In this document: positions 4,426 to 56,872 of the stretch, in pieces
Layout of the letters: each line of letters opens with the position of its first letter
Numbering within the stretch: the first letter of the stretch is position 1
IMG/VR virus record: IMGVR_UViG_3300042558_003926
Location: 124,001-188,000 of that record
Strand: one strand, 5' to 3'
Length of the DNA stretch: 64,000 nucleotides
Position numbers and translations under genes: made by a program
The notes under the pieces: model-generated
What the model saw: only the letters and a program-made list of their open reading frames with translations
Databases searched by the model: none
What the model was told of the DNA's origin: nothing

Positions 4426-5052
4426 ATGGGACAAATAAAATACTTCGAACAATTTTTAAATGAGAGAGAACTTCCCGATAACCAAGGGGAAGTTCTCGTC
4501 ATTTTAGGGGCACCTGGATCAGGGAAGGGAACACTAGCAAAAGTTCTACAAGATGACTATGGAATCAATCATATATCCACTGGTGATCTAATTAGAAAGT
4601 CGGATGACGAGGAGCTTAAAAAAATAATAGCTGGTGGTGATCTTGTACCTGACTCAATGATAGTTAAAATGCTCGTTTCCGAACTAAAGAATATAGACCC
4701 TTTAGAGGGTGTTATTTTTGATGGATTCCCAAGGACAATTAAACAAGCTAAAAAGCTTGATTCTATTCTTGGCAAGATGGGGCTTGGGTTAAATCACGCG
4801 ATATTTCTTGATCTTGATGAAAAAATAGCCAAGGAAAGGATAAAAGAAAGAGCAAAGAAAGAGGATAGAAAGGATGATTCCAGCGATGAGGTTATAGAAA
4901 ACAGATTCAAAGAATATCACAATAAGACATTCCCTTTAGTTGACTTTTATAAGAGAAGTAGAAAACTTCTAAAAATAGATGCTGAGGGGGGAAAGGATAA
5001 AGTACTCTCTAAAGTTGTTGAAAAACTGGGACTTACTAAGAAGAAAAAGTAA
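4426..5052 (+). CDS. adk: Adenylate kinase with N-terminal leader peptide
   Basis: GAPGSGKGT P-loop, HISTGDLIR, DGFPRT, RKDD. Extra N-terminus MGQIKYFEQFLNE. Confidence 0.92.
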   Translation: MGQIKYFEQFLNERELPDNQGEVLVILGAPGSGKGTLAKVLQDDYGINHISTGDLIRKSDDEELKKIIAGGDLVPDSMIVKMLVSELKNIDPLEGVIFDGFPRTIKQAKKLDSILGKMGLGLNHAIFLDLDEKIAKERIKERAKKEDRKDDSSDEVIENRFKEYHNKTFPLVDFYKRSRKLLKIDAEGGKDKVLSKVVEKLGLTKKKK

Positions 5053-16785: not shown

Positions 16786-18243
16786 ATGCCATCAAATAGA
16801 GTTCTCGATTTTTTCTCCTATATTAATGAGGCTAAGGTAGACACCACAAAAATAGTGGTTCTGACCGGTAACGTTAAGGGAAGTAAGACTTCATCGTCTT
16901 TTGAGAAAGAGTGTAAGAAAAGAAAAATAGAATGCTATATAGTAGACGTAAACGATGCTATTATAGAGAAAACATACAATGGACACACATTTAAGACGGG
17001 GGACAAGGAAATCCAAATAGACCCGAACTCTACTGTAATTGTACCAAGAAGAGGAGTTTTAGAAAACTCATACACTAAGCAGATCCTTTCATATCTGGAG
17101 GATTCCAGATATTTTACAGTAAACACTTTGGAATCTATGGAAGTGTGCGAGAATAAGTATTTAACTTCTCAGATATTGGAGGAGAGTGGTTTACCAGTTC
17201 CTAAATGTGCTTTAGTTCCCAATGAGGATTTTCTAGATTCCGCTCTAAAACAAATAGGTGGTAAATTCCCAGTAGTTATGAAGCTGCTTGCAGGAACTCA
17301 GGGAATAGGAGTTTCTATAGTTGATTCGTACTCTTCATTGAAATCTGTCTACCAAACCATCAGAAAGCTAGATGGAGATAATGAGATTTTAATCCAAGAA
17401 AAAATAGATTCCAACTTTGATCTTAGAATTCAAGTTATAATCAAGAAATTCGACCCTTTACAGCCAGATCCTGATAACTGCATTATCCTGGGATCGATGA
17501 AAAGACAGGCGGTTAAGAAAGACTTTAGAACCAACTATTCTTTAGGTGGATCTGTTTCGAAATACAACATATCTAAAGAAATAGAAGAAATTGCATGTAA
17601 AGCGGCAAATGCAGTAGGTTGCCATTGGTGTGGGGTTGATATTATGATAGATTCTAAAACTAAGAAGCCTTATATACTGGAAGTTAATTCCTCTCCTGGT
17701 ACGGAAGGAATATCGCAAGCAATCGGAAAGCCTATAGTTGATGACGTTATAAATTATCTTGTTGAAAAGAGCAACTGGTCTTATTCCAATTTAGAAATAG
17801 GATACTTAGAAACTATAGAGATACCAGGAATTGGTAATATAGTAGCTAAGTTTGATACCGGAAACGGAGCAAAATCATGCAGTATGCACTGTGATGAGGT
17901 TGAAGAGGTTGACGGTAAGCTAAAATGGAAAATCGGTAAGAAGAATTTTGTTAGCGATATCGTGGGATATTCGGATGCCGAAGTAGGTAGGGATATACAC
18001 ACTAGACCAATAATAGAGATGGACATAATGTTCCACGGTGTTCTGGTACCTGCAGTTAAGATTTCTCCAGTCGACAGGACAGAGAAAAGCACACCATTCT
18101 TAGCAAATAGAGGATTTATGAGAAGACTTGGTCTAATTGTTAATCCATATAAAGCCTTTGTGGTTTCAGAAGAACCTAAAGGAGGATATCAGGTTGGGGC
18201 TTCTAAGGGTAAATCCCACGCAGGAATTAAATTCGAAAAATAA
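16786..18243 (+). CDS. RimK-like ATP-grasp ligase fused to retropepsin-like (DTG) protease domain
   Basis: CENKYLT, GTQGIGV, IQEKI, FRTNYSLGG, GVDI, EVNSSPG. C-terminal AKFDTGNGA. Confidence 0.88.
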   Translation: MPSNRVLDFFSYINEAKVDTTKIVVLTGNVKGSKTSSSFEKECKKRKIECYIVDVNDAIIEKTYNGHTFKTGDKEIQIDPNSTVIVPRRGVLENSYTKQILSYLEDSRYFTVNTLESMEVCENKYLTSQILEESGLPVPKCALVPNEDFLDSALKQIGGKFPVVMKLLAGTQGIGVSIVDSYSSLKSVYQTIRKLDGDNEILIQEKIDSNFDLRIQVIIKKFDPLQPDPDNCIILGSMKRQAVKKDFRTNYSLGGSVSKYNISKEIEEIACKAANAVGCHWCGVDIMIDSKTKKPYILEVNSSPGTEGISQAIGKPIVDDVINYLVEKSNWSYSNLEIGYLETIEIPGIGNIVAKFDTGNGAKSCSMHCDEVEEVDGKLKWKIGKKNFVSDIVGYSDAEVGRDIHTRPIIEMDIMFHGVLVPAVKISPVDRTEKSTPFLANRGFMRRLGLIVNPYKAFVVSEEPKGGYQVGASKGKSHAGIKFEK

Positions 18244-18839: not shown

Positions 18840-20270
18840 ATGGATCTAGTTTCAGCTTTACAACAATCTAATACAACTACCGAGAATGGAATGGTAACAA
18901 ATTCTAGCTCTCTTGATAACTGCGTTGATATGTTTTTTAAAATCGGAGCTTTTAGATCTGCGGAAGAAGCTGATGTGATTAGAGTTTTTTCTCTTGCCTT
19001 TTCAGAGGATCCGGTTTCCGCTTTAAGAATTCTTTTCTGGGCTAGAGACATCAGAGGTGGTGCTGGAGAGAGAAGAGTTTTTAGAATATGCCTGGAATAT
19101 CTTTCCAAAGCTAATAGAGAGGCTATAGTTAGGAACATGCCTCTTATCTCTGAATATGGAAGATGGGATGATTTGCTTGTATTTTTCGGTACGGATCTTC
19201 AGGACGAGGCAGCAAAGTTAATTAAGGGTGCTCTGGATTCTGAGAATGGTCTTTGTGCTAAATGGATGCCTAGAAAGGGATTTGTTGCTAACGAGCTTAG
19301 AAAGTTCATGGGAATGACACCGAAGGATTATCGTAAGACCCTTGTTTCTCTTACTAATGTGGTTGAGCAGAATATGTGTTCCGGTAAATGGGAAGACATT
19401 AACTATTCGCAGGTTCCTTCTGTAGCTGCTGCCAGATACCAGAGAGCTTTCTATAAAAGAGACACAGAAAGGTATGCAGAATACATTAGACTCTTATCTC
19501 TTCCTGCAGAATCTAGACCGGAAGGAGTAAAGATAAATGCGCAAGCCGTTTATCCATACGATGTTCTAAAATCAATCAGAAAAGGTAACGAAGACGTAGC
19601 AACCGCCCAGTGGAACGAACTTCCCGATTATATGGAGGGAAGCTCAGATATGATATTACCTGTAGTGGACGTATCCGGATCTATGACAACCGGGATTTCT
19701 AGCGGATCATCTTTAACCTGTATGGATGTTGCAATTTCTCTTGGACTTTACATCTCCGAAAGAAATGTGGGGCCTTTCCAGGATCACTTCATCACATTTA
19801 GTGAAAGACCTGAACTCCAAAAACTAAAGGGTAATCTTTACGAGAGATATCACCAATTAGAATCTTCTGAGTGGGGGATGTCTACTAATTTAGAATCGGT
19901 GTTTGATTTAGTTTTGCGTCAGGCTATTAAACATAACGTGGGTAAAGAATCGATGCCAACTAAGATATTGATTCTTTCCGATATGGAATTCAACCAGGCC
20001 ATTCGTGGAGGAGAAAGCGTTTCAGCTATAGAGATGATCAGAGGAAAGTACGAGAAAGCTGGATATGATATGCCATCTATTATATTCTGGAACATTCAGA
20101 GTAGGAGTGGAGGAAATAATGTTCCGGTTAGATTCGATGAGTCGGGAACTGCTTTAATCTCCGGATTTTCGCCTTCCATTTTGAAATCGATACTCTCAGG
20201 GAATAACATTACTCCTATTGATATTATGCAAGAGACGATAAATTCGGAAAGATATAAAAATATATCATAA
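18840..20270 (+). CDS. TROVE-like/vWA protein (DUF2828-type)
   Basis: RDIRGGAGERRVF, YGRWDDL, AKWMPRKG. vWA MIDAS motif DVSGSM and ILSDMEF. Confidence 0.85.
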   Translation: MDLVSALQQSNTTTENGMVTNSSSLDNCVDMFFKIGAFRSAEEADVIRVFSLAFSEDPVSALRILFWARDIRGGAGERRVFRICLEYLSKANREAIVRNMPLISEYGRWDDLLVFFGTDLQDEAAKLIKGALDSENGLCAKWMPRKGFVANELRKFMGMTPKDYRKTLVSLTNVVEQNMCSGKWEDINYSQVPSVAAARYQRAFYKRDTERYAEYIRLLSLPAESRPEGVKINAQAVYPYDVLKSIRKGNEDVATAQWNELPDYMEGSSDMILPVVDVSGSMTTGISSGSSLTCMDVAISLGLYISERNVGPFQDHFITFSERPELQKLKGNLYERYHQLESSEWGMSTNLESVFDLVLRQAIKHNVGKESMPTKILILSDMEFNQAIRGGESVSAIEMIRGKYEKAGYDMPSIIFWNIQSRSGGNNVPVRFDESGTALISGFSPSILKSILSGNNITPIDIMQETINSERYKNIS

Positions 20271-22573: not shown

Positions 22574-23062
22574 GGGCCCGCTTTGGATTTGACAGGCGGA
22601 GGTAGTTCTTTGAGATGCAGGCAGTCTTAGATTGGAAAGACTTTAATTACCTATCAAACAATAAACGCAAACGTTTACAATTCTGAGGATATCATGAGTA
22701 TCCCAACTTCACTTACTCGTTCGGTAGTAACTGAAGAGGTTGAGCTAGCTGTTGCAGCCTAACCAATTGGCGGCAACTGCCAATCATAAAAGAAAGTTGC
22801 AAGCTGGCAAGAAAAAAGGTTCGTAGTATTGCCTATTTGACATTGAGTGGAACCTTGAGGATTAGTCCAATACCCATTTAGATCGTCACTATCAATGTCA
22901 GTGAAACTTGGCTAATACCTGGGAGTAGACCAGACTGAGCGTTAAGTCTGAAAGAAAAAAGAAACGCACCCAAAGTTTGTTGATGTCAAACAATCAACTA
23001 AGCCTGTGAATGAGTCCAATGGACATTCGATCTGGACGAGGGTTCGACCCCCTCCGGGTCCA
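22574..23062 (+). ncRNA. ssrA: tmRNA (about 489 nt)
   Basis: 5' GGGCCCG pairs with 3' CGGGTCC+A, giving the G3-U70 Ala determinant. GATTTGACAGG D-loop analog, GGTTCGACCCC T-arm, internal tag ORF ending LAVAA. CCA is not encoded. Confidence 0.93.
22667..22762 (+). other. tmRNA tag reading frame ANVYNSEDIMSIPTSLTRSVVTEEVELAVAA*
   Basis: GCA resume codon after ATAAAC. Ends in AVAA-TAA. Confidence 0.8.
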
Positions 23063-23070
23063 CTAAATTA

Positions 23071-23099
23071 ATCCCATCCTCTACCGGATGGGATTTTTT
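23071..23099 (+). terminator. Terminator after ssrA
   Basis: ATCCCATCC / GGATGGGAT followed by a T run. Confidence 0.85.
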
Positions 23100-23101
23100 G
23101 T

Positions 23102-23109
23102 GATATATA
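23102..23109 (+). promoter_or_regulatory. Putative late promoter GATATATA
   Basis: Ends 5 nt before the ATG at 23115. Confidence 0.55.
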
Positions 23110-23113
23110 GGAA

Positions 23114-23179
23114 TATGAAACACATTAAATTATTTGAAGATTTCATGAATCTAGATAATCTTAAGGGATTACAAATGAT
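23114..23179 (+). repeat. 66-nt exact direct repeat, copy 1
   Basis: Identical to 23861-23926. Encodes MKHIKLFEDFMNLDNLKGLQMI. Confidence 0.95.
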
Positions 23180-23729
23180 TGATGAGGATATTTTTGATTT
23201 AATTGGTAAACATCCAAATTACTTTAACAGTTCTTACGTTTCAAAAATAGCTAATAAGTTAGGATATAAACTAAAAATAAATTTAGATTCAGGTAATAAT
23301 GGTGTTGCCTATATATTAGATGGCGGTAAAGTATTAAAAATAACTACGGATAAAACAGAATTTTTAGTAGCTAATAAATTAAAAGGTAAAAATTTAAAAA
23401 GAATAAGTAACATATATGAAACTTACAAAATTAAAGACCAAGGCGTTTATATAATAGTTTTGGAATATTTAGATAGTTTACCAGAAGAATTGTTTGAATT
23501 AGTGAAAAATTATAACGGATCCTTTGGTTGGGGGCCAGAATTTGATTGGTTGATAATACAATTGAATGATATTGAAACCGAATTAAAGAATAACGGTATA
23601 TCAGATCCAAAAGATTTTGATTGGGGGATGAATATGGGATTAAAAAATGGAAATTTAGCGGTATTCGATGTTGGTGATCAAACTATTAATTATGGTGATT
23701 ATCCAGAATTAGATATTTCAAATTTATAA
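23115..23729 (+). CDS. Protein-kinase-like fold protein with leader (start 23115)
   Basis: SGNNGVAY Gly loop, VLK, E helix, VLEYL hinge, D...N and FDVG. Very AT-rich. Confidence 0.55.
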   Translation: MKHIKLFEDFMNLDNLKGLQMIDEDIFDLIGKHPNYFNSSYVSKIANKLGYKLKINLDSGNNGVAYILDGGKVLKITTDKTEFLVANKLKGKNLKRISNIYETYKIKDQGVYIIVLEYLDSLPEELFELVKNYNGSFGWGPEFDWLIIQLNDIETELKNNGISDPKDFDWGMNMGLKNGNLAVFDVGDQTINYGDYPELDISNL

Positions 23730-23848
23730 CGCGGGTGGGATTTTTCTTTTAAAATTTTCAACCGAAATTTTGATTAGAACGATGAACGGAACACTTACAC
23801 ATAACTTTTTAATCCCCTCCGGTCCTAGGGCATTTGGGACTCCGTACG

Positions 23849-23856
23849 GATAAATA
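23849..23856 (+). promoter_or_regulatory. Putative late promoter GATAAATA
   Basis: Ends 5 nt before the ATG at 23862. Confidence 0.55.
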
Positions 23857-23860
23857 GTAT

Positions 23861-23926
23861 TATGAAACACATTAAATTATTTGAAGATTTCATGAATCTA
23901 GATAATCTTAAGGGATTACAAATGAT
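23861..23926 (+). repeat. 66-nt exact direct repeat, copy 2
   Basis: Identical to 23114-23179. Confidence 0.95.
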
Positions 23927-24689
23927 AAATGAATACTTAGTAAATGATGTAATAAGGTTTAAGAAATATCTCGAATCCCCAAAATCTTTAAAGAAGAAAT
24001 CTCTTCCTCATAAATACTACTATCTCTTTGATGATTTTATTTTAGAAACCGGGTATAAATTTAAGGGGTCTAAAGAAATTGATGGAGATAAAATAATATC
24101 ATGGATAGAGAATAATGATAAGAAAGCCTACGAAGAATTTGCAGAATATCTGTACAATAAGATAGAAGATGAAACCCTCCCGATAGAAAAACGTAAGTAT
24201 CCTGCTTGGAGGTGGCTTAAATCCCCTGAGATAATTAAAAACCAATGGCTCATACATTTTACTGATTATGCGAAAGAGATCAGTAAAGATGGATTCAAAT
24301 ATGGAGCTAAAAATCTTGATGATCTGGCAGCTACTACAAGATTATCTAAAGCTGATAAAGAGGCAGGAGGATATAATTTTGCATTTTCAATCGATGATTT
24401 TCCTAAGTACTATAGCTATTATACTAATTACGGTCTTTTACCAAAATATGGACCTCTTGCTGTGTTATTTAAAGCTTCAGGTATTAGGGTTTGGCATGAA
24501 AAGGATCAGGAGTATCAGGTGATTTTTTATGGGAGAGAGGCTACTGATATAATACCTATAGTGTTCGGAGAAAAGAATTGGGCAATATTTGATAAAGATG
24601 GAAGAGTATTATTTGAGAATGATGACTTGGATAGGGTTGTTAAATGGGCGATAGATAACTATAATCAATATCGCAAAAAAATTGATTGA
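23862..24689 (+). CDS. Hypothetical protein with leader
   Basis: Same first 22 aa as 23115 but an unrelated body (WLIHFT, GYNFAF, YG...VLF). Confidence 0.7.
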   Translation: MKHIKLFEDFMNLDNLKGLQMINEYLVNDVIRFKKYLESPKSLKKKSLPHKYYYLFDDFILETGYKFKGSKEIDGDKIISWIENNDKKAYEEFAEYLYNKIEDETLPIEKRKYPAWRWLKSPEIIKNQWLIHFTDYAKEISKDGFKYGAKNLDDLAATTRLSKADKEAGGYNFAFSIDDFPKYYSYYTNYGLLPKYGPLAVLFKASGIRVWHEKDQEYQVIFYGREATDIIPIVFGEKNWAIFDKDGRVLFENDDLDRVVKWAIDNYNQYRKKID

Positions 24690-25719: not shown

Positions 25720-26088
25720 ATGAGAATAGCTGTAATTGCACACGATAACAAGAAAGCTGATCTCGTTGCTTTTATTCTGAAGAGACTTGATTTTTTTAAA
25801 AAACACGAGATCGTAGCAACTGGGACCACAGGTAAGCATATAGAGCACGCCGGCATAGAGGTAACAAAAAAGCTTTCCGGTCCTAAAGGAGGAGATGCAC
25901 AGATAGCAGCGGAACTTGTTGAAGGTCGAATAGATGGGGTTCTTTTTTTCATTGATCCCTTAACATCTCATCCACATGAGGTTGACGTCCAGATGTTGCT
26001 AAGACTTTGTAATGTGTGGAATATTCCAATAGCAACAAACTATTCTACGGCTAAGCTTCTAGTAGAAGCTATAATTAAAGAGAAGTAA
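25720..26088 (+). CDS. mgsA: Methylglyoxal synthase
   Basis: IAHDNKK, ATGTTG, SGPKGGDAQI, DPL, PHEVDVQMLLRLC, PIATN. Confidence 0.95.
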   Translation: MRIAVIAHDNKKADLVAFILKRLDFFKKHEIVATGTTGKHIEHAGIEVTKKLSGPKGGDAQIAAELVEGRIDGVLFFIDPLTSHPHEVDVQMLLRLCNVWNIPIATNYSTAKLLVEAIIKEK

Positions 26089-26089
26089 A

Positions 26090-26782
26090 ATGATACTGTG
26101 CTTTATATCAGATACTCATGGCCAGCACGAGAATCTTAAATTAAACCTATTCCTAGAGAAAATTCTTGGCAAATATCCTGATTCGGTTTTGATCCACTGT
26201 GGGGATATTTCAAATAGAGGCAGAGATTATGAGGTAGTGGATTTTATTTCCTGGTACGATAGTTTAGGGTTTAAAAAAAAGATACTGGTAGCAGGAAATC
26301 ATGATTTTCTTTTCGAAACTAATCCTGAAAGATGTAACGAAATACTAGACGGAAAGACGATAATATATCTGAATGATTCTGGTGTAGAGATAGATGGTAT
26401 TAAATTTTGGGGAAGTCCAGTAACTCCCTGGTTCTATGACTGGGCTTTTAACAGGAGAGGCGAAATTGTTGATCACTGGGATCTAATACCTTCGGATATA
26501 AATATACTCATTACACACGGTCCTCCAAAAGATATTCTTGATTACACTTTCAATGGACACAAAAATGTTGGTTGTCCAGAGCTTTCCAGAAAGATTGGGG
26601 ATCTAAAGAATCTTATAGCACATTCCTTCGGTCACATCCACGAATCATTTGGAACAGATATCATAGATGGGGTTACCTATATTAACGCCTCTTTTCTGAA
26701 TCTTTCCTATTATCCAGCCAACTATCCCATCATATTTGATACCGAGGAAAAAAAATCCTATATTTTTTCAGACCTAGACTGA
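26090..26782 (+). CDS. Calcineurin-like metallophosphoesterase
   Basis: SDTH, GD, GNHD, THGPP, GHIHE. Confidence 0.9.
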   Translation: MILCFISDTHGQHENLKLNLFLEKILGKYPDSVLIHCGDISNRGRDYEVVDFISWYDSLGFKKKILVAGNHDFLFETNPERCNEILDGKTIIYLNDSGVEIDGIKFWGSPVTPWFYDWAFNRRGEIVDHWDLIPSDINILITHGPPKDILDYTFNGHKNVGCPELSRKIGDLKNLIAHSFGHIHESFGTDIIDGVTYINASFLNLSYYPANYPIIFDTEEKKSYIFSDLD

Positions 26783-26829
26783 AATCTTATTGATATTTGT
26801 TCATAGAAAAATAAAACAATAAATTTTAA

Positions 26830-27606
26830 ATGAGAACTTTCCAAAAACCATCCGATGCTATAAAATGGACTAAGGAGCGGTTGTCTGATTGTGGGTATGT
26901 AGTTAAAACGGAAAAATGGCAGGGTATAGAAGCACCCGACGATATGTTTGAGATTATGAACCATTCTTTCCAAATGTTTATCCCACATTCTTTGGAAGAA
27001 CTTATTGATGAGGTAAAACCGAATCTTGACTGGGCGGATGAGCACTTCTTTGAAAGAGTTGGGGGTCTTCCCCTTAATCCACCTCCTTCCCATGTTAACT
27101 GGCCATTTGCTCAAAAGAATAACGAGAAGTTTGGTGGGAATAGTAGATTTTCCCACACCTATCCGGAAAGGATATGGCCTAAATACGCATCAGAAGAACC
27201 CAATACCAAATTATCAGGAATACGTTTCGATTACGGAGATCTTGCTGATGTTGTTGATTTATTAGAGAAGGAGCCATTTACCAGACAGGCTTTTTTGCCC
27301 ATATGGTTTCCTGAGGATACCGGAGTAACCCACGGAGAAAGAGTACCGTGTACTATAGGGTATCATTTTATGCGGAGAGGAAATTGGTTCCATATAGCTT
27401 ACTTTATTAGATCATGTGATTATATAAGACACTTTAGAGATGACATATATCTAGCGATAAGAAAACTTATGTGGATATTAGATGAGCTTAAAAAGAGAAA
27501 TCCGGATACATGGAACGATGTTGTTCCTGGGTATTTTTCTATGCACATAATATCTTTGCATTGCTTTAATAGCGAGAAGGGATTATTAAAATTAAGTAAT
27601 AAGTAG
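26830..27606 (+). CDS. Divergent thymidylate-synthase-fold enzyme (candidate dCMP-modifying)
   Basis: TRQA, catalytic PC, RSCDYIRHFRDD where canonical ThyA has RSxDxxxGxxFN. Confidence 0.75.
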   Translation: MRTFQKPSDAIKWTKERLSDCGYVVKTEKWQGIEAPDDMFEIMNHSFQMFIPHSLEELIDEVKPNLDWADEHFFERVGGLPLNPPPSHVNWPFAQKNNEKFGGNSRFSHTYPERIWPKYASEEPNTKLSGIRFDYGDLADVVDLLEKEPFTRQAFLPIWFPEDTGVTHGERVPCTIGYHFMRRGNWFHIAYFIRSCDYIRHFRDDIYLAIRKLMWILDELKKRNPDTWNDVVPGYFSMHIISLHCFNSEKGLLKLSNK

Positions 27607-43210: not shown

Positions 43211-43483
43211 ATGGCAATAAGTCCAAACATGCTAAGTAGTCAATTTATGAAGGAAGTTGATCACTATGAAAAACTAATAGACCAGATTTTAATAGAGAAG
43301 ACCCTTTCACCGGGATCTTCCATATCTCTGGATGTACCAACTTCTATGACACATCAGCATTTTAAAATCATCAGAGAAAGATACATGTCCGCTGGATGGT
43401 GCAATGTCATCTGGCATTCAGATCAAAGAGATGGTGATTACTTATCTTTTATTATGACGAATAAGTCAGCGAAGAACAATTGA
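43211..43483 (+). CDS. Hypothetical protein
   Basis: 90-aa ORF. Confidence 0.5.
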   Translation: MAISPNMLSSQFMKEVDHYEKLIDQILIEKTLSPGSSISLDVPTSMTHQHFKIIRERYMSAGWCNVIWHSDQRDGDYLSFIMTNKSAKNN

Positions 43484-43803
43484 TAATGGAAGATTGGTTA
43501 CTAAATTGGACTGCATTTGTTACACGAAATACACATGCAGTAATGGACGGGATATCACATGATGATGGTCCTGAGTGGTACGATAAGATGTGGGAGTCTT
43601 GGAAGAGAAATTCAGATCATGGACAGAAGTTAAATGAGATACGCTACCGGGACATAGATCCGGATTCTGGTGACATTTCATCTGATAAGATCATATGCAC
43701 ATGCCACGGCGTTTCTATAACTAATTGGGTTTATGGTGCGATTAGTACCAAGTCAATAGAATTAGATGACCCAAATAGGGAAATCTATATAAAAGAAAAT
43801 TAA
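43480..43803 (+). CDS. Hypothetical protein
   Basis: 107-aa ORF. Confidence 0.5.
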   Translation: MIMEDWLLNWTAFVTRNTHAVMDGISHDDGPEWYDKMWESWKRNSDHGQKLNEIRYRDIDPDSGDISSDKIICTCHGVSITNWVYGAISTKSIELDDPNREIYIKEN

Positions 43804-43828
43804 AGAGTAACAATTAAAAACAAATAAG

Positions 43829-44224
43829 ATGAATGAGTACAGAGAGGAAGAGAGATTCTTCAAAAGAATGGTTTATTGGGTGATTGGTTTAGTAATCGTC
43901 CTATCAGTCGGTGGATTTGTAATCCACAAATTTAGAGAGGCAACACGGGTTGATACTGCTGTTCAGAACTACGAGGAGTATCAGGAGATCTACAACACTT
44001 GTGTTAAGATCAATATGGATATCTGCAACATGAAAGATGTCCCAGAAACAGATCCTATGTTTAGCCAGTTTAGTAAAGCACAAAGAATCCTGACTTTAAG
44101 AACAAACCTTAACCGATGGATCGAGGAATATAATGCTAAGTCAAAGATGTGGGGCAGAGCATTATGGAAGTCAAATAGTTTACCATATCAATTAAGTAAC
44201 CAAGAGTTTAATTGTAACAATTAA
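43829..44224 (+). CDS. Membrane-anchored hypothetical protein
   Basis: TM helix, EYNAKS motif. Confidence 0.6.
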   Translation: MNEYREEERFFKRMVYWVIGLVIVLSVGGFVIHKFREATRVDTAVQNYEEYQEIYNTCVKINMDICNMKDVPETDPMFSQFSKAQRILTLRTNLNRWIEEYNAKSKMWGRALWKSNSLPYQLSNQEFNCNN

Positions 44225-44228
44225 GAAA

Positions 44229-44801
44229 ATGAAAAAATTATTAGCAATTTTAGTATTGATGTTTGCGATAACATCATGTGACCGAGAATTAGAAAATACT
44301 TCTGCTTTAGACGAGCAAAAGAAAACTGAAGCAAACCAAAGAGATCTGAATGCGATCCAGCCCGCACCAAAAATTTCATGGTCATTAGAAAGGGATAACC
44401 TAATCAAAAGATTTAAGTTGCAAAACGATAGATCGATTTCTTTCTATATGTATGTATTCGTAGAAGGTGTGGGGGAGCCTATTGGCTATTACCAAGTTAA
44501 TAAGGTATCTTCAGTAAATTCTCAACTTACTAATACTGAGCAAATTGTAACTTATACATCTCCACATTCTGGTGATGGTTGGGGTCAACATGTGTTACCA
44601 AGTCCTGCTGAAGATGGTTCTTATGGTACTAACGGAGATGCTGTTTTTGGGTTTACTCCAGAAGATATTTACATCGAACACAACATGCACTACATGGTTT
44701 CTACAGTTCCTTTATCATTCACCAAACCTGTGAATAGATTAACTATCATTAATGTTGAGACGGAGAAACAGTTGAAAGATATAATGGCTAAAATTAGATA
44801 G
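44229..44801 (+). CDS. Putative lipoprotein
   Basis: Signal peptide with lipobox ITSC. Confidence 0.7.
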   Translation: MKKLLAILVLMFAITSCDRELENTSALDEQKKTEANQRDLNAIQPAPKISWSLERDNLIKRFKLQNDRSISFYMYVFVEGVGEPIGYYQVNKVSSVNSQLTNTEQIVTYTSPHSGDGWGQHVLPSPAEDGSYGTNGDAVFGFTPEDIYIEHNMHYMVSTVPLSFTKPVNRLTIINVETEKQLKDIMAKIR

Positions 44802-44810
44802 CATTGGATT

Positions 44811-44881
44811 AGTCAGGTGGCTTAGTGGTAAAGCCCGACCTTTTAAGTCGGAGTACGTAGGTTCGATTCCTGCCCTGACTA
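44811..44881 (+). tRNA. tRNA-Lys (anticodon TTT at 44842-44844)
   Basis: Acceptor stem AGTCAGG/CCTGACT, D-arm GCTT/AAGC, anticodon stem CCGAC/GTCGG with loop CTTTTAA, T-loop TTCGATT. No encoded CCA. Confidence 0.9.
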
Positions 44882-44894
44882 CTAAAAACAAAAT

Positions 44895-45494
44895 ATGAAT
44901 AAACTTGAATTAACTGACGAGCAACTTTGGATAGTACAGAAGGCTTTAGATTTCTACTCTAGAGTGGGTATAGGTCAATTCTGGACAATCAAGGAGCATC
45001 CAACTTTTGAGAATCATCTAATAGATGAATTTACGCCAAAGAGGGGGATTCCACTAGAAGTCGGGGACAAGACAGTTAGAGGCGAAGTTGTTGAGATTGG
45101 CAAGAAATGGGTAAAAACCAAGGGATCCTGGGGTGAGGGAGAAGAGATTAAAAAATGGACTGATGTTGATAAGATAAGAAGATCGCCAGATTATCGTAGA
45201 TATCATGAAGTTAGAGAATCCGTAGATGCTTCCCTGATTCAACCCCGAAACATGCTGATCAACGATCCGCTCATGTCTAAACATGGATCGTGGGGAATAC
45301 ACAACAAGTCGGTCGACGATTCATGTAGGATAGCCTTTGATATAATCCAAGTAATCCGACACGAGAGATGGAAACTAAATCCAGAAAGGTCTCAAGCAAC
45401 AGTGGATTCACACATACACTTTACCCACTCTAAAGATGGATCTTCTAATAAGATCAAATGCCAACTTAATATCGAAGACGATGAAAACAATTAA
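44895..45494 (+). CDS. Hypothetical protein
   Basis: 199-aa ORF. Confidence 0.6.
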   Translation: MNKLELTDEQLWIVQKALDFYSRVGIGQFWTIKEHPTFENHLIDEFTPKRGIPLEVGDKTVRGEVVEIGKKWVKTKGSWGEGEEIKKWTDVDKIRRSPDYRRYHEVRESVDASLIQPRNMLINDPLMSKHGSWGIHNKSVDDSCRIAFDIIQVIRHERWKLNPERSQATVDSHIHFTHSKDGSSNKIKCQLNIEDDENN

Positions 45495-46509: not shown

Positions 46510-47421
46510 ATGGCTCAAAGTATATTAGAAACAGCTTATAATAATAAAATCCGAAACATGGTTGGATCTCTTCCTTATCTGGAATTTGGATTCCCCTATA
46601 TGGAATCCTTCGAGCCTTACCATAATTTATCTGAGGAAAGAATTATGCAAGCCCACGTCAGGCATTTCAATTTGGAAAGATACCAAGTATCGTCCACTAT
46701 AGCTATAGAAACCGTAAATTCTTTAAAACATTTTCATGGCGTAGATGCGGGAGAGACGATCAAGGAGGTATTATTTAATGAGTTTAAAAGATTAAAGGAG
46801 AAGAATTTATATAAGATTTATGTGGAGAATTCTACCAACGAGCTTAAACCATCTGATACCAAACTAGGTTCTTGGATTAAACGAAATTTATTTAAGACCA
46901 AGAGTTTTCCCCATTATATAGACAATGATCCTACTCGATTGCTTTCAATCATAAGGGAAGCTTCATATAAAATAGCAGAATCATGCAAATTCGGTCCAGG
47001 AGATTTCGTAATCGGTTCTCCCTCTGTGGTTTCAATCATAAAAGCACACCCCCTATTTAGACCAACGATGTCAGAATATGAAGGATCGATAGAGAAGGAG
47101 GGATGTTTTGATGCAATTATCCCTATTGATGTCTACATAAACCCTGCACTTTCTTGGGACGACACTAAAATAATTGTTGGTAGATCGAATAATGCTAATT
47201 TAGAAAATGGATTCTTTGTTATTAGCGCTGAGGACTATCCCACATTGGAGACGATAGCTACTGTATCACCAACGGGGGAAAAAATTACAAGAGCGGTGGA
47301 TCATATTTCCATAGGGAAGCTTTCCCCTGAAAATTCACACAAGAGATTAATCAGCATCCAAATTGATCTAGGAAAGAAACCTTTGTGGAGAAGAATTCTA
47401 GAATTACTTGGAGCTAGATAG
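46510..47421 (+). CDS. Divergent truncated major-capsid (gp23/gp24)-like paralog
   Basis: STIAIETVNSLKHFHGVDA, GPGDFVIGSPSV and IDVYINP...IIVG recall gp23 segments such as ELAQDLKAxHGLDAE, GNFVVCSP and VYVDP. Confidence 0.5.
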   Translation: MAQSILETAYNNKIRNMVGSLPYLEFGFPYMESFEPYHNLSEERIMQAHVRHFNLERYQVSSTIAIETVNSLKHFHGVDAGETIKEVLFNEFKRLKEKNLYKIYVENSTNELKPSDTKLGSWIKRNLFKTKSFPHYIDNDPTRLLSIIREASYKIAESCKFGPGDFVIGSPSVVSIIKAHPLFRPTMSEYEGSIEKEGCFDAIIPIDVYINPALSWDDTKIIVGRSNNANLENGFFVISAEDYPTLETIATVSPTGEKITRAVDHISIGKLSPENSHKRLISIQIDLGKKPLWRRILELLGAR

Positions 47422-55378: not shown

Positions 55379-56872
55379 ATGGAAAATATCATATCTTTTA
55401 GCACATTTTCATCGATTAATGAATCGGTGGATCCTAATGCTACTAATATCATTATAGGAGATTCTGCATCCCCTCTGATGGCTTTAAATATCAAAAATGC
55501 TAGTCTTTTGTCTAATCAACAGGGAGAAGGTTCTCTTTGGAAAGGTGGGAAGGGAGTTAAATGGTTAAAATCTGCAGTTTCTAAATATCCAATTTCTCCG
55601 AGAATACAGAACGTTGTCATCAACATTGGCACCAACGGAGGTTTTAATAAGAAGGATGACATAAAGGGACTATACACCGAACTTAAGAGAGTATTCCCTA
55701 ATGCTAGATTCCTACAATTACAGGGAAGCTGGGGATGGGGAGGAAATAGGAATGTAACAGAGGCACAGGTTAAGGAATACTACAAAGGGTACGAAAAGGA
55801 GGGAGCTATCATAGTTTATCCAGCAAAGGGATATGTTGCAACCGATAGAGAAGCACACACCAATAGACCAGTCTTGGCTAAGATCGGTGCTGAAGTAGAC
55901 CGTTTAATAAATACACCAGGTAAAGTCGTTTCTTCTGAAGTTTCGTATTCTACTACATCCTCAGGACAGGGAGAAAATACACAACAGTATTCTACCGGAT
56001 CTTCTAATGTTATAGGAGGAATTATATCCAGAAAAGGAGATCCATATAAATACAAGGTGGAAAATGATCACTGGATGGCAAAAAGAGACGATCACACTAG
56101 ATGGTATGAAATAACAGGGAAGGACTTTAAACCGGCATATCAAGTTTCAATTGATATATTAGATACAGAAAATCCTACCTCTAGAACAGAAAAAGCTCCA
56201 AAAAGAACTGTTAAAAATCCAGGGACTAGTACCAATACCAATACAAACACGGTCACTAACACCCAAGACGATATAGATCAGGTTATTCTTCCTTTAGAGA
56301 AGGGAGCGGATCCGGAAAAGCTAGATCCTAAGATCTCCAAGGAATTCAATTTTCATTTAATTCCCGACGGGAAAGAAACCAACTACAGAAGTGCTCAATT
56401 ACCTATGAAGCACATGAAGAACATGTATATTAAATACGGTATTAAGAGAGTTATCAGATTAAACGGCGACGGGAAGGACGCAAAACATCATATGCTAAAC
56501 AAAGCAGTTACCATAGAGGAAGAAAAAGCTCTATGTAAGGAGATAGGATGTGAATTCCATAAGTTATCATCAGTTAAAGATCAAGCGAAAGTAAACGAGC
56601 TTCTAGCTAAGGGAAACACACTTATACACTGTGCCCACGGAGCTGATAGGACTGGGGGTAACGTCGGAGGATATTTATATGACACCAAAGTCAATTCTTC
56701 TTTAATCACACCGGAAGCAATCTGGAAATACACAACACAATACAACAACTGGAACTCAATGGCTAAGAATAGGCCAAAGAAATTTGCAGATGGGGGATAT
56801 TTAACGCAGGCACAAAAATTTGGAGTAGAGGATTTAGAATCTGCCAACGCTCTAGCTAAAAAATACAAATAA
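55379..56872 (+). CDS. Multidomain protein: leader, SGNH-like domain and Cys-phosphatase (PTP/DSP-like) domain
   Basis: MENIISFSTFSSINES, IIGDS and NIGTNG, HCAHGADRTG (CX5R). Confidence 0.7.
   Translation: MENIISFSTFSSINESVDPNATNIIIGDSASPLMALNIKNASLLSNQQGEGSLWKGGKGVKWLKSAVSKYPISPRIQNVVINIGTNGGFNKKDDIKGLYTELKRVFPNARFLQLQGSWGWGGNRNVTEAQVKEYYKGYEKEGAIIVYPAKGYVATDREAHTNRPVLAKIGAEVDRLINTPGKVVSSEVSYSTTSSGQGENTQQYSTGSSNVIGGIISRKGDPYKYKVENDHWMAKRDDHTRWYEITGKDFKPAYQVSIDILDTENPTSRTEKAPKRTVKNPGTSTNTNTNTVTNTQDDIDQVILPLEKGADPEKLDPKISKEFNFHLIPDGKETNYRSAQLPMKHMKNMYIKYGIKRVIRLNGDGKDAKHHMLNKAVTIEEEKALCKEIGCEFHKLSSVKDQAKVNELLAKGNTLIHCAHGADRTGGNVGGYLYDTKVNSSLITPEAIWKYTTQYNNWNSMAKNRPKKFADGGYLTQAQKFGVEDLESANALAKKYK

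Follow-up and report, generated by a model that had tools for sequence, protein, structure and literature searches.

How two adjacent genes with unrelated products come to begin with the same 66 nucleotides is the question raised by this locus, which lies in a 64,000-nucleotide stretch (the window; positions 124,001 to 188,000 of the IMG/VR record IMGVR_UViG_3300042558_003926) of a 289,651-bp (~290 kb) lake/freshwater jumbo phage genome, G000. A reading made from the sequence alone had interpreted the repeat as a snapshot of leader shuffling: a newly acquired domain would take over a leader already present and thereby gain virion packaging, or the leader itself would serve as a recombination cassette. 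The features concerned are as follows:

23114..23179, + strand: repeat copy 1, T plus codons 1–22 of gene 1, exact 66 nt
23861..23926, + strand: repeat copy 2, T plus codons 1–22 of gene 2, exact 66 nt
23115..23729, + strand: gene 1, 204 aa, predicted minimal protein-kinase-like cargo (AlphaFold, Foldseek, invariant columns)
23115..23186, + strand: gene 1 leader MKHIKLFEDFMNLDNLKGLQMIDE, 24 aa, composed of the type-A 10-residue motif, a linker and a putative protease site, I-D-E
23862..24689, + strand: gene 2, 275 aa, leader MKHIKLFEDFMNLDNLKGLQMINE, with a helical N-terminal domain and a C-terminal domain weakly ADP-ribosyltransferase (ART)-like

The two copies stand in direct orientation, 747 nt apart, and begin 1 base 5' of the respective ATGs (23115 and 23862). 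The exact match goes no further on either side; the 12 nt 5' of the copies are alike but not identical (GATATATAGGAAT versus GATAAATAGTATT), each being a promoter-like motif whose end lies 4–5 nt from the ATG, and at the other end identity stops at base 2 of codon 22, where the first mismatch is synonymous (ATT/ATA, Ile22) and is followed by GAT/AAT (D/N23) and GAG/GAA (E24), beyond which gene 1 and gene 2 share no similarity. The exact duplication claimed in the sequence-only reading, its stop within the codon before the predicted protease site (MI-DE versus MI-NE) and the unrelatedness of the downstream domains have thus all held. Full copies of the repeat number two in the whole genome, with no others within the window, and if the same 22 residues had been encoded twice independently under the genome's own codon usage, nucleotide identity would be expected with P ~5e-8.

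The repeat is real and does not stem from a chimeric assembly. Two further IMG/VR contigs, assembled from other samples, match at 100% identity across 7–13 kb that include both copies, and in run X1 the 66-nt repeat has a unitig depth of 23.6, compared with 12.4 for the left flank, 12.3 for the gene 1 body and 10.9 for the right flank; with double depth for R and single depth for B, A-R-B-R-C is the one order that the unitig graph allows. Because independent assemblies agree and the repeat unitig lies at twice the depth of its flanks, an assembly artefact can be set aside. No form carrying an in-register deletion between the repeats, a check that had been proposed alongside the sequence-only reading, was seen in the Logan contigs, which were the only material searched (no raw or long reads). 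A read-contig joint, 23110>23869, was rejected as such a form, being out of register with the repeat and supported by 21 nt on one side; it was taken as the cross-mapping of another gene.

The cargo of gene 1 probably adopts a protein kinase-like superfamily fold, although this is a model-based prediction and kinase activity is untested. The AlphaFold model (pLDDT 79.6) is below 50 for residues 1–24 and confident from there on; Foldseek matches in the PDB include PknB, YabT and APH(2''), with E from 2e-5 to 5e-5 and TM ~0.45. The criteria found comprise a bilobal fold, the beta3 Lys, the alphaC Glu, the catalytic D..N and a DFG-like Asp, and the corresponding residues K75, E82, D167, N173 and D185 are invariant or nearly so in the alignment of relatives. 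Gene 1 has no Pfam match, and nothing usable was obtained from Pfam or PHROGs on either cargo protein. Its GC content of 25.9% is the lowest among 356 crudely called genes (mean 37.5%, sd 3.5) and agrees with that of the related locus L019 (27%); a foreign, AT-rich origin is likely.

For gene 2, the AlphaFold model is of higher confidence (pLDDT 88.9), and leader residues 1–24, which end in I-N-E at residues 22–24, are again of low confidence and detached from the folded body. An ADP-ribosyltransferase-like assignment of its C-terminal domain is possible but tentative, resting on weak fold resemblance only: VIA-align returned Scabin at Z 5.3, and at least 25 of the top 50 matches have the ART fold, all of them below the trust level of Z 8, while Foldseek found no significant match in either the PDB or AFDB. 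Residues H132, Y171 and E217 are conserved, the ART criterion being an H-Y-E or R-S-E triad. Among 77 gene 2 homologues, the leaders end in a near-invariant hydrophobic-x-E junction, and in the tree of gene 2 bodies the type-A leaders form one clade (SH-aLRT 96). Confinement to a single clade indicates vertical inheritance, and gene 2 is accordingly the likely native owner, that is, the donor, of the leader; repeated leader swaps within the gene 2 family were considered and dropped on the same ground. The bodies of gene 1 and gene 2 have no sequence similarity, different folds and separate families of homologues.

That a leader has been swapped, and that the resulting cassette is mobile, is shown by comparison with other phages. 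Relatives of gene 1 at 71–85% identity carry a different leader, type B (MKDLKQFIKTTIREF..INE), which is likewise found at the N-terminus of multiple cargoes, and homology between gene 1 and these relatives resumes, in protein and in DNA, at the I-x-E junction; DNA homology to L019 begins at 23171, with microhomology at the junction. Moreover, a cassette of promoter, leader and gene 1, 704 nt long and 97% identical by blastn, recurs in L016–L018 (L016 7988–8691 = G000 147102–147805). The L016 copy begins at the promoter motif, and apart from this cassette the ~8.8-kb loci of L016–L018 have no similarity to the window's genome; gene 2 was not seen in the contigs with the L016 copy. Similarly, in the syntenic locus L076 the slot after ssrA is occupied by a different cargo, preceded by the same 10-residue leader, and homology to the window stops at leader codon 10 (the L076 contig ends 510 nt past ssrA). 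Gene 1 has therefore traded one leader type for another rather than gained a leader from nothing; the contigs at hand do not settle exactly where, or in which order, the recombination events took place.

The surroundings of the two genes include the following elements:

22574..23063, + strand: tmRNA (ssrA), marking the slot of the leader-cargo gene (ARAGORN; Rfam RF00023, 85.5 bits)
23070..23101, + strand: terminator-like hairpin CCCATCC..GGATGGG plus T-run (terminator scan; -18.8 kcal/mol, z -2.25)
23102..23110, + strand: promoter-like motif of gene 1, GATATATAG, putative late class, 4 nt before the ATG
23730..23805, + strand: 3' flank travelling with gene 1, right end of the 704-nt cassette, 97% identical with L016–L018
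23849..23857, + strand: promoter-like motif of gene 2, GATAAATAG, 4 nt before the ATG

The ssrA gene is 93% identical in the syntenic relative (G006/L076). The hairpin abuts the promoter motif and forms with it a composite terminator/promoter unit (23070–23110), and the 21-nt GGGATTTTTTGTGATATATAG recurs 5' of another leader gene (G000 222506–222526). The L016 copy of gene 1 has gene 2's version of the motif (GGATAAATAATATT), not that of the window's gene 1. Across the genome, GATAWATA occurs 78 times and lies at most 45 nt upstream of the start in 43 genes, large structural genes and the protease open reading frame among them; the motif or a near variant is present at 11 or more of 20 leader genes. 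In several leader genes it stands 3–6 nt from the ATG, and the 5' untranslated regions would accordingly be very short. Late expression of the leader genes together with the head genes remains no more than a possibility, inferred from a motif common to structural genes without transcript data; in the RNA runs, fewer than 10% of the sampled words were present. Downstream of gene 1, neither a terminator scan nor folding gave a canonical or clear terminator, and the 73-nt 3' element (23733–23805) has no repeat elsewhere in the window's own genome and folds no better than shuffles. Unitig depth is raised at 23744–23827 in runs X9, X13 and X18.

The leader itself is widespread. Some 20 genes of the window's genome begin with MKxIKxFExF, and all matches to the strict motif M-[K..]-x-[ILVM]-x-x-[FY]-[ED]-x-[F..] in this genome (20/20) fall at starts of open reading frames; hydrophobic-N-E-[ASN] is ~9-fold enriched at residues 11–20, and such N-termini occur on head-module neighbours too. 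In IMG/VR, exact MKHIKLFEDF was found at 61 loci on 32 unrelated cargo clusters, with hydrophobic-x-E at residues 11–13 in 28 of 53 MKHIKLFEDF genes; many cargoes thus share one leader. It may be set beside the capsid-targeting proposal, as a counterpoint, that hydrophobic-x-E is short and common. Other leader-bearing genes within the window include:

4426..5052, + strand: leader-bearing adenylate kinase with a 25-residue N-terminal extension MGQIKYFEQFLNE... (Pfam ADK 1.4e-38, domain from residue 26)
16786..18243, + strand: gene with leader-like N-terminus MPSNRVLDFFSYINEA, promoter motif upstream
55379..56872, + strand: gene with leader-like N-terminus MENIISFSTFSSINES, promoter motif 13 nt upstream

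Among the tagged proteins there are also P-loop enzymes. Ordinary enzymes such as adenylate kinase are not classic head-internal proteins, which is a second counterpoint to that proposal.

The same 10 residues, MKHIKLFEDF, are written in 33 nucleotide versions. Positions 4 (I/V/L) and 7 (F/Y) are conserved, and positions 4, 7 and 10 remain hydrophobic or aromatic while synonymous sites vary freely among phages, which places selection on the peptide and not on RNA. For the same reason the leader is not a recombination signal at the level of DNA, and recombination merely uses whatever identity two leaders share, a refinement of the sequence-only reading. Leader types are mutually exclusive within a phage and specific to phage lineages: the window's own genome has 20 type-A and no type-B leaders, type-A-seeded loci have 136 A and 0 B, and type-B-seeded loci have 49 B and 4 A. 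No type-A leader genes were found in the cultured relatives MaF61, pT24 and PTm1, and no model system thus supports this leader type; megablast of the locus and tblastn of gene 2 against the same collection of cultured phages gave no match. Nothing relevant on KLFEDF or KLFEEF was found in the literature searched, and the jumbo-phage reviews examined make no mention of targeting leaders.

T4-type head machinery is present in the window phage. Its genome encodes a T4-type prohead protease (S77) fused to scaffold, together with a Gp23-type capsid protein, as supported by Pfam matches to Peptidase_S77 (PF03420, 34.2 bits, above the cut-off) and Gp23 (PF07068, 137.8 bits) and by PHROG matches to head maturation protease (9.5e-39) and major head protein. 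In the protease-scaffold open reading frame (G000 43277–45307), the S77 domain occupies residues 1–244, and the scaffold part has ~14 tandem repeats, each with L-A-E-N, and hydrophobic-N-E sites that cluster towards the C-terminus (63 per 1000 versus 21 expected); these repeated cleavage-type sites are paralleled in T4 gp22. Gp23 and/or S77 was found in all five large leader-bearing records. The window phage also encodes a ClpP-like gene besides its tmRNA.

The nearest known parallel is the capsid-targeting sequence (CTS) of T4, a 10-residue element with targeting residues 4 and 7, in a system where cleavage follows Glu in L/I-X-E (PMC9026906); the internal proteins of T-even phages are diverse and have only the CTS in common (Mullaney & Black 1996; Repoila et al. 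1994; reviewed in PMC9026906 and PMC3012670). The window leader resembles the CTS of IPI, IPII and IPIII in its shortness and N-terminal place, in having hydrophobic or aromatic residues at the key positions 4 and 7, in being closed by a hydrophobic-x-Glu site with a gp21/S77-type prohead protease in the same genome, in standing on unrelated cargoes that vary between related phages, and in having promoter motifs of the structural-gene class. However, M1, K2 and F7 are the only residues of MKHIKLFEDF that recur in the T4 CTS, printed as MKTYQEFIAE (PMC8442874), and the likeness is therefore architectural, homology not being shown. The window-phage leader is often longer (13–24 residues) and tags ~20 or more scattered genes per genome as opposed to a handful at one or two loci. 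The phage itself stands far from T4, in a Lak-related lineage that probably infects Bacteroidota; its kind of leader comes in two or more types that exclude each other, and an exchange between types has been caught in the window phage. Similarly, the locus recalls the promoter-early stem-loop (PeSL) cassettes by which T4-type phages shuffle modules (Arbiol et al. 2010, PMC2839356; Comeau et al. 2014, PMC4122927): a terminator-like hairpin joined to a promoter-like motif lies directly 5' of an accessory gene that varies, close relatives differ by indels or replacements with their limits exactly at such units (L076, L016), the cassette carries its own promoter, and identical short segments recur at other loci. 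The window promoter, however, is of the structural-gene (late-like) class and not sigma-70 early, there is no canonical terminator 3' of gene 1, and the homology used reaches into the coding leader, with the consequence that exchange yields in-frame protein fusions. In phiKZ, 201phi2-1 and SPN3US, propeptide-bearing head or ejection proteins are accompanied by a gp21-like protease (PMC9026906, PMC5694885, PMC7411985); these are likewise jumbo phages with many candidate head-internal proteins, and a diverged gp21 homologue processes after Glu at a minimal three-residue motif. Their propeptides differ in being long, heterogeneous and cut at S/A/G-X-E, and no short, shared, portable leader is described in those three sources.

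On this basis, the explanation that is modestly favoured, by analogy, is that a recent leader swap left the repeat behind and that the leader works in the manner of the T4 CTS. The leader (MKHIKLFEDF, linker, hydrophobic-x-Glu) would take late-expressed cargo into the scaffolding core of the prohead, the S77 (gp21-type) prohead protease would then remove it after the Glu, and the mature cargo would stay in the head and be ejected with the DNA. Gene 1 would come from an AT-rich phage lineage using the type-B leader; once in a type-A phage, it would acquire the promoter and leader of gene 2 by recombination at the shared junction codons ..CAAA-GAT-AATGAA (Q-x-I-N-E), after which the promoter-leader-cargo cassette would move between phages and land in the post-ssrA slot of the window's genome, the left crossover falling where the resident leader begins. 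That the cargo is expressed late, targeted to the capsid, cut at I-x-E and finally ejected is inferred for a phage that is uncultured, without proteomic, expression or biochemical evidence, and a complex prediction of the protease-scaffold open reading frame with leader residues 1–45 gave no answer and is evidence neither way. With regard to the sequence-only reading, the late-type motif before each ATG (which also precedes structural genes), the low GC of gene 1 and its position right after ssrA have held; capture of a resident leader by an incoming cargo is upheld by the comparative data, including the variable cargo that it had proposed to look for behind a constant leader, with the refinement that the leader was exchanged and not newly gained, and virion packaging remains an inference.

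The alternative that survives best, and remains possible, is that the leader, although a real N-terminal module open to swapping, is no capsid-targeting propeptide; it might be a translation-start or mRNA feature of nearly leaderless late transcripts, a degradation or regulatory tag (e.g., for the ClpP-like protease) or a helix that docks onto a different phage assembly. In its favor are the promoter motifs within 3–6 nt of the ATG, the presence of a ClpP-like gene and tmRNA, the adenylate kinase and P-loop enzymes among the tagged proteins, and the absence of direct packaging evidence, the complex prediction being uninformative. Against it, selection acts on the peptide, with free synonymous sites and positions 4, 7 and 10 kept; the leader closes, always at the same distance, with hydrophobic-N-E-[A/S], a type of site repeated periodically in the scaffold; leader-like N-termini occur on genes within the head module; leader-bearing phages have S77 and/or Gp23; and the architecture parallels the experimentally defined T4 CTS.

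A second alternative, that ongoing gene conversion between two adjacent resident leader genes, and not a one-off capture, keeps the copies identical, is unlikely. The short distance and direct orientation of the copies (747 nt) speak for it, as do the avid recombination of T4-type phages (PMC2839356) and the zero leader mismatches among the window's gene 1, gene 2 and the L016 copy, set against 11 body differences between the two phages' gene 1. However, a divergence of 2%, as in the body, predicts only ~1–2 mismatches in the leader, and zero is therefore not significant; in relatives whose gene 1 body is 85% identical the leader is another one altogether, which means that a replacement did occur, and the L016 copy has the same leader, yet no gene 2 is seen in its contigs. 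Gene conversion would in any case be maintenance added onto the swap and not an alternative to it. Lastly, an assembly chimera (conceivable in principle, as a 66-nt repeat exceeds common k-mer sizes and could mislead assemblers, and as all three contigs with the P0079 variant break ~200 nt past gene 1) and ancient paralogues with bodies diverged past recognition are all but excluded by the identical assemblies and single-order unitig graph described above and by the differing folds (kinase-like versus helical plus ART-like) of bodies that lack sequence similarity and have a homologue family each; neither of these outcomes, which the sequence-only reading had named as its refutation, has been borne out.

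Returning to the capsid-targeting reading, a bolder version can be framed, about which doubt outweighs confidence. In this version, uncultured T4-like jumbo phages would use lineage-specific N-terminal address codes, at least two in number (MKHIKLFEDF..hydrophobic-N-E and MELRKFIATTIREYLNE), each co-evolving with its own protease-scaffold, and effectors crossing between lineages would need to be re-addressed. The hydrophobic-N-E codons would then act as a universal in-frame splice junction, giving an exon-shuffling-like supply of dozens of ejected effectors, kinase-like and ART-like ones included.

The locus is a dated, base-resolved case of cargo re-tagging between phage lineages, and it also exemplifies the use of cleavage-site codons as an in-frame recombination junction. 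Should the leader prove to be a capsid-targeting propeptide, the ejected-protein repertoire of many uncultured jumbo- and mega-phages could be identified by a simple rule on sequence; each genome would contribute dozens of such proteins, most without a known function, with kinase-like and possibly ADP-ribosylating enzymes among them, and these proteins would be the likeliest first actors in host takeover and anti-defence. Leaders of this kind might also serve to load phage heads with foreign proteins, a use to which the T4 CTS is already put.

The two genes that share the repeat, together with the elements preceding the first of them, are arranged as follows.

Features around the repeat (window positions)
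22574-23063: tmRNA gene (ssrA), ending 50 nt 5' of gene 1
23070-23101: terminator-like hairpin and T-run, adjoining the promoter-like motif of gene 1
23115-23729: gene 1, 204 aa
23862-24689: gene 2, 275 aa

Window 23114-23179 equals 23861-23926 exactly over 66 nt, without extension on either side; each copy starts 1 base 5' of its ATG (23115, 23862) and runs as far as the second base of codon 22, from where gene 1 reads ATT GAT GAG (I-D-E) and gene 2 reads ATA AAT GAA (I-N-E). Only residues 1-24, the leader, can be aligned by BLASTP, no similarity being found between the two proteins past I-x-E, and the 12 nt 5' of the copies differ at 4 positions and are otherwise related (GATATATAGGAAT versus GATAAATAGTATT). 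Under the genome's codon usage, nucleotide identity would have P ~5e-8 if the same 22 residues had been encoded twice independently; the repeat is therefore attributed to a recent copy and not to constraint on the peptide. A chimeric assembly, which the sequence-only reading had named as a refutation, is excluded, because other samples yielded two IMG/VR contigs with 100% identity over 7-13 kb spanning both copies, and Logan unitig depth in run X1 doubles in the repeat (left flank 12.4, repeat 23.6, gene 1 body 12.3, right flank 10.9), the unitig graph of this run being that of a true two-copy repeat. What that reading had described, namely an exact 66-nt repeat on unrelated bodies with identity ending inside the codon that precedes the predicted protease site (MI-DE versus MI-NE), thus stands.

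With regard to the cargo, the gene 1 body matches PknB, YabT, and APH(2'') in Foldseek (E ~2e-5), and across its family none of the kinase positions (Lys, Glu, D..N, and the DFG-like motif) varies; the modelled body is a minimal protein-kinase-like fold. For gene 2, Foldseek yields nothing significant; its C-terminal domain scores Z 5.3 against Scabin, and ART-fold proteins account for at least 25 of the top 50 matches, all under the tool's trust level, so that a weak ADP-ribosyltransferase-fold resemblance is a lead rather than an assignment.

The two genes differ in how they came by the leader. Nearly all of the 77 gene 2 homologues carry a variable leader closing in a conserved hydrophobic-x-E (..NE|Y-I-T-N-D..) before a conserved body, and in a body-only tree the leaders of type A (the MKHIKLFEDF-like form of this phage) fall in one clade (SH-aLRT 96), so that the leader of gene 2 is vertically inherited; the orthologue in a 434-kb relative, at 71% nucleotide identity, includes the leader within the alignment. 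A 96% variant of gene 1 has the same leader as gene 1, whereas relatives with 71-85% identical bodies start MKDL[KR]QFIKTTIREFVEEQKINE (type B) and share sequence only from ..E-D-I-F-D-L onward. For one such relative, the phage at locus L019 (with Gp23 nearby), DNA homology, at 86% identity, does not set in until window 23171, which is 8 nt short of the end of the repeat, and CAAA-GAT-AATGAA is common to both parental junctions. The first gene had been called AT-rich, and correctly so: at 25.9%, its GC content is the lowest of all genes in the genome and agrees with the 27% of L019. The type-B leader heads 21 cargo clusters and is strictly N-terminal, lying within the first 16 ORF residues in 40 of 42 matches.

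Matches to the two leader types
Own genome: type A 20, type B 0
Type-A-seeded loci (538 kb): type A 136, type B 0
Type-B-seeded loci (384 kb): type A 4, type B 49

Because the types exclude each other, leader type belongs to the phage, and a cargo moving to another lineage takes on a different leader. Separately, a more distant phage with a kinase-like gene 1 homologue (L012:4784-7010, 25% GC) has neighbouring genes sharing another recurrent N-terminal type, and its N-termini MKILLNESQLKKLILTES, MKIIITENQFKILYEQ, and MNLNENIERIRQIMISEE hint at further leader families.

Mobility of the cassette is evident from another phage, represented by three assemblies (L016-L018, 41% GC), which have in common with our genome only 704 nt at 97% identity (window 23102-23805), running from the promoter motif through the leader and gene 1 into 76 nt of 3' flank; blastn finds no similarity to our genome in the remainder of the ~8.8-kb loci, which lies nearly all 5' of gene 1. 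The promoter of this copy is gene-2-like (GGATAAATAATATT), unlike that of gene 1 in the window, and the 21 differences are distributed as listed.

Differences between the L016-L018 cassette and the window copy
Promoter: 4
Leader: 0
Body: 11
3' flank: 6

In a close syntenic relative (locus L076 of record G006), with 85-90% identity over 8.6 kb upstream and a 93% identical ssrA, the terminator and promoter after ssrA are followed by a gene starting MKHIKLFEDF, in which DNA homology to the window stops at codon 10; a homologue of its cargo is absent from our genome. Variable cargo behind a constant leader, the check proposed for relatives, is thereby found, and it also accounts for the exact repeat of the window starting directly at the ATG. 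Most likely, although by inference, a cassette with the promoter and leader of gene 2 recombined into a resident post-ssrA leader gene, the left crossover falling within its first codons. As side observations, the L016 (8616-8827), L017, and L018 contigs, three independent assemblies, end less than ~20 nt apart, ~200 nt past gene 1, which hints that the next gene (MSKEMREYIDN..) begins with a repeat or a hypervariable site. Moreover, a 73-nt stretch 3' of gene 1 (window 23733-23805), single-copy in this genome and without a significant fold, reaches, in three lake metagenomes, a unitig depth 2-15x that of the flanking sequence and joins several different downstream sequences; other phages thus carry it as well.

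Beyond this locus, a back-translated MKHIKLFEDF pattern retrieves 61 IMG/VR loci with 53 unique ORFs, 48 of which have at least 60 residues and form 32 BLASTP clusters. Residues 11-13 are hydrophobic-x-E in 28 of the 53 (VNES, INEA, LNEA, etc.), and all five large leader-bearing records contain Gp23 and/or S77 genes. As many as 33 different nucleotide sequences code for these 10 residues, and their codon usage is ordinary; hence it is the peptide, and not the DNA or RNA, that is under selection. Within the genome, the strict N-terminal pattern M-[K..]-x-[ILVM]-x-x-[FY]-[EDG]-x-[FLYI], run on the six-frame translation, gives 20 matches, every one at the start of an ORF of at least 70 aa and most without a Pfam family; among them is an adenylate kinase (window 4426-5052) with a 25-residue leader-type extension (MGQIKYFEQFLNE..). 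This is an ordinary metabolic enzyme, unexpected as a head-internal protein. Hydrophobic-N-E-[A/S/N] at residues 11-20 of phage proteins is ~9-fold enriched (10 observed, ~1 expected), and N-termini such as MRILNFSEFALNES and MLSFYDFMNED occur on genes adjoining the capsid and protease genes. The promoter-like GATA[AT]ATA occurs 78 times genome-wide, lies within 45 nt 5' of the start in 43 genes, including the protease ORF and large structural genes, and, itself or as a near variant, precedes at least 11 of the 20 leader genes. Consequently, the proposed "late-type motif" is a real class, its late timing being inferred without expression data. An identical 21-nt unit of terminator T-run and promoter motif (GGGATTTTTTGTGATATATAG) lies 5' of two different leader genes (window 23090-23110; whole record 222506-222526) and suggests that such units also get shuffled.

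The phage itself (IMG/VR record of 289,651 bp, 37% GC, of which the window is 124001-188000) occurs in lake water, in at least 18 DNA runs dated 2018-2024. Its head genes are of T4 type. A Peptidase_S77 (gp21) match lies within a 676-aa ORF (whole record 43277-45307), which is labeled head maturation protease by PHROGs and directly followed by a Gp23-type major capsid protein gene. The nearest relatives of this capsid protein are those of Lak megaphages and of an uncultured 462-kb phage (43-46% identity), the jumbo phages of Flavobacterium, Tenacibaculum, Chryseobacterium, and Sphingomonas being farther away; given these relatives, a Bacteroidota host is plausible, not shown. A second Gp23-like gene (window 46687-47217), distant from the main head module, is a possible vertex-protein paralogue. 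Among further observations on the neighborhood, the region 2.3 kb 5' of the tmRNA gene encodes a 476-aa TROVE/Ro60-like protein (window 18840-20270; DUF2828 and DUF7788; phrog_850 'RNA-binding protein'), with no Y-RNA-like partner at Rfam gathering scores within the window. The tmRNA has a predicted tag ending ..EEVELAVAA and, with a ClpP-like protease gene (whole record ~207876-208512; 77% nucleotide identity to a gene with PF00574 in the 434-kb relative), makes a phage-borne tagging-plus-degradation pair that could form its own unit. A short way downstream, window 25720-27606 encodes a protein with an MGS-like domain, a metallophosphoesterase, and a third protein, divergent but thymidylate-synthase-like (PHROG 4e-24, Pfam below cut-off), that could be a pyrimidine-modifying enzyme; a tRNA-Lys(TTT) gene is at window 44811-44882. 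In the protein cluster of gene 1, the longest contig given is 337,724 bp, against the 289,651-bp record rated 100% complete; a longer or concatenated assembly may exist.

In T4, gp21 cleaves after the Glu of L/I-X-E, and the capsid-targeting sequence (CTS), residues 1-10 of IPIII, uses residues 4 and 7 for targeting and 8 and 10 for processing (PMC9026906). T-even internal proteins are highly diverse, with only the conserved CTS in common (PMC3012670, citing Repoila 1994), and the CTS has been proposed as an evolutionary device to load diverse proteins (review PMC9026906). Similarly, leader positions 4 and 7 are conserved hydrophobic or aromatic residues, and the leader closes in hydrophobic-x-E; however, homology is not demonstrable, as only M1, K2, and F7 coincide (T4 string from PMC8442874). 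Within the protease ORF, the scaffold part has ~14 tandem 14-residue repeats (YSKYLAENLDKNIS-like), each with L-A-E-N, and a C-terminal cluster of LNES, INEA, INEG, and LNEG, giving 63 cleavage-type sites per 1000 residues versus 21 expected by composition, the second-highest density in the genome. Such concentration in the scaffold resembles T4 gp22, and the array, putatively of periodic self-cleavage sites, is an independent, sequence-inferred indication of protease specificity. AlphaFold gives low confidence at residues 1-24 of both proteins and confident bodies from ~25-40 on, and modelling the protease-scaffold protein in complex with the leader yielded no answer, neither for nor against. 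The leader system matches the defining architecture of the T4 CTS/internal-protein system, with packaging and cleavage inferred; the suggested virion packaging is likewise an inference, capsid targeting being well motivated by analogy with T4 in the absence of packaging or cleavage data.

In its mode of exchange, the locus is similar to PeSL-mediated modular shuffling (PMC2839356, PMC4122927). Unlike PeSL, the promoter here is late-like and the shared sequence continues into the coding leader, so that in-frame fusion products result. In the literature searched, no account of this leader family was found. The duplication itself is confirmed, and the different leader on relatives, the mobile cassette, and the other cargo in the L076 slot support, as originally proposed, the shuffling of leaders between phage cargo genes.
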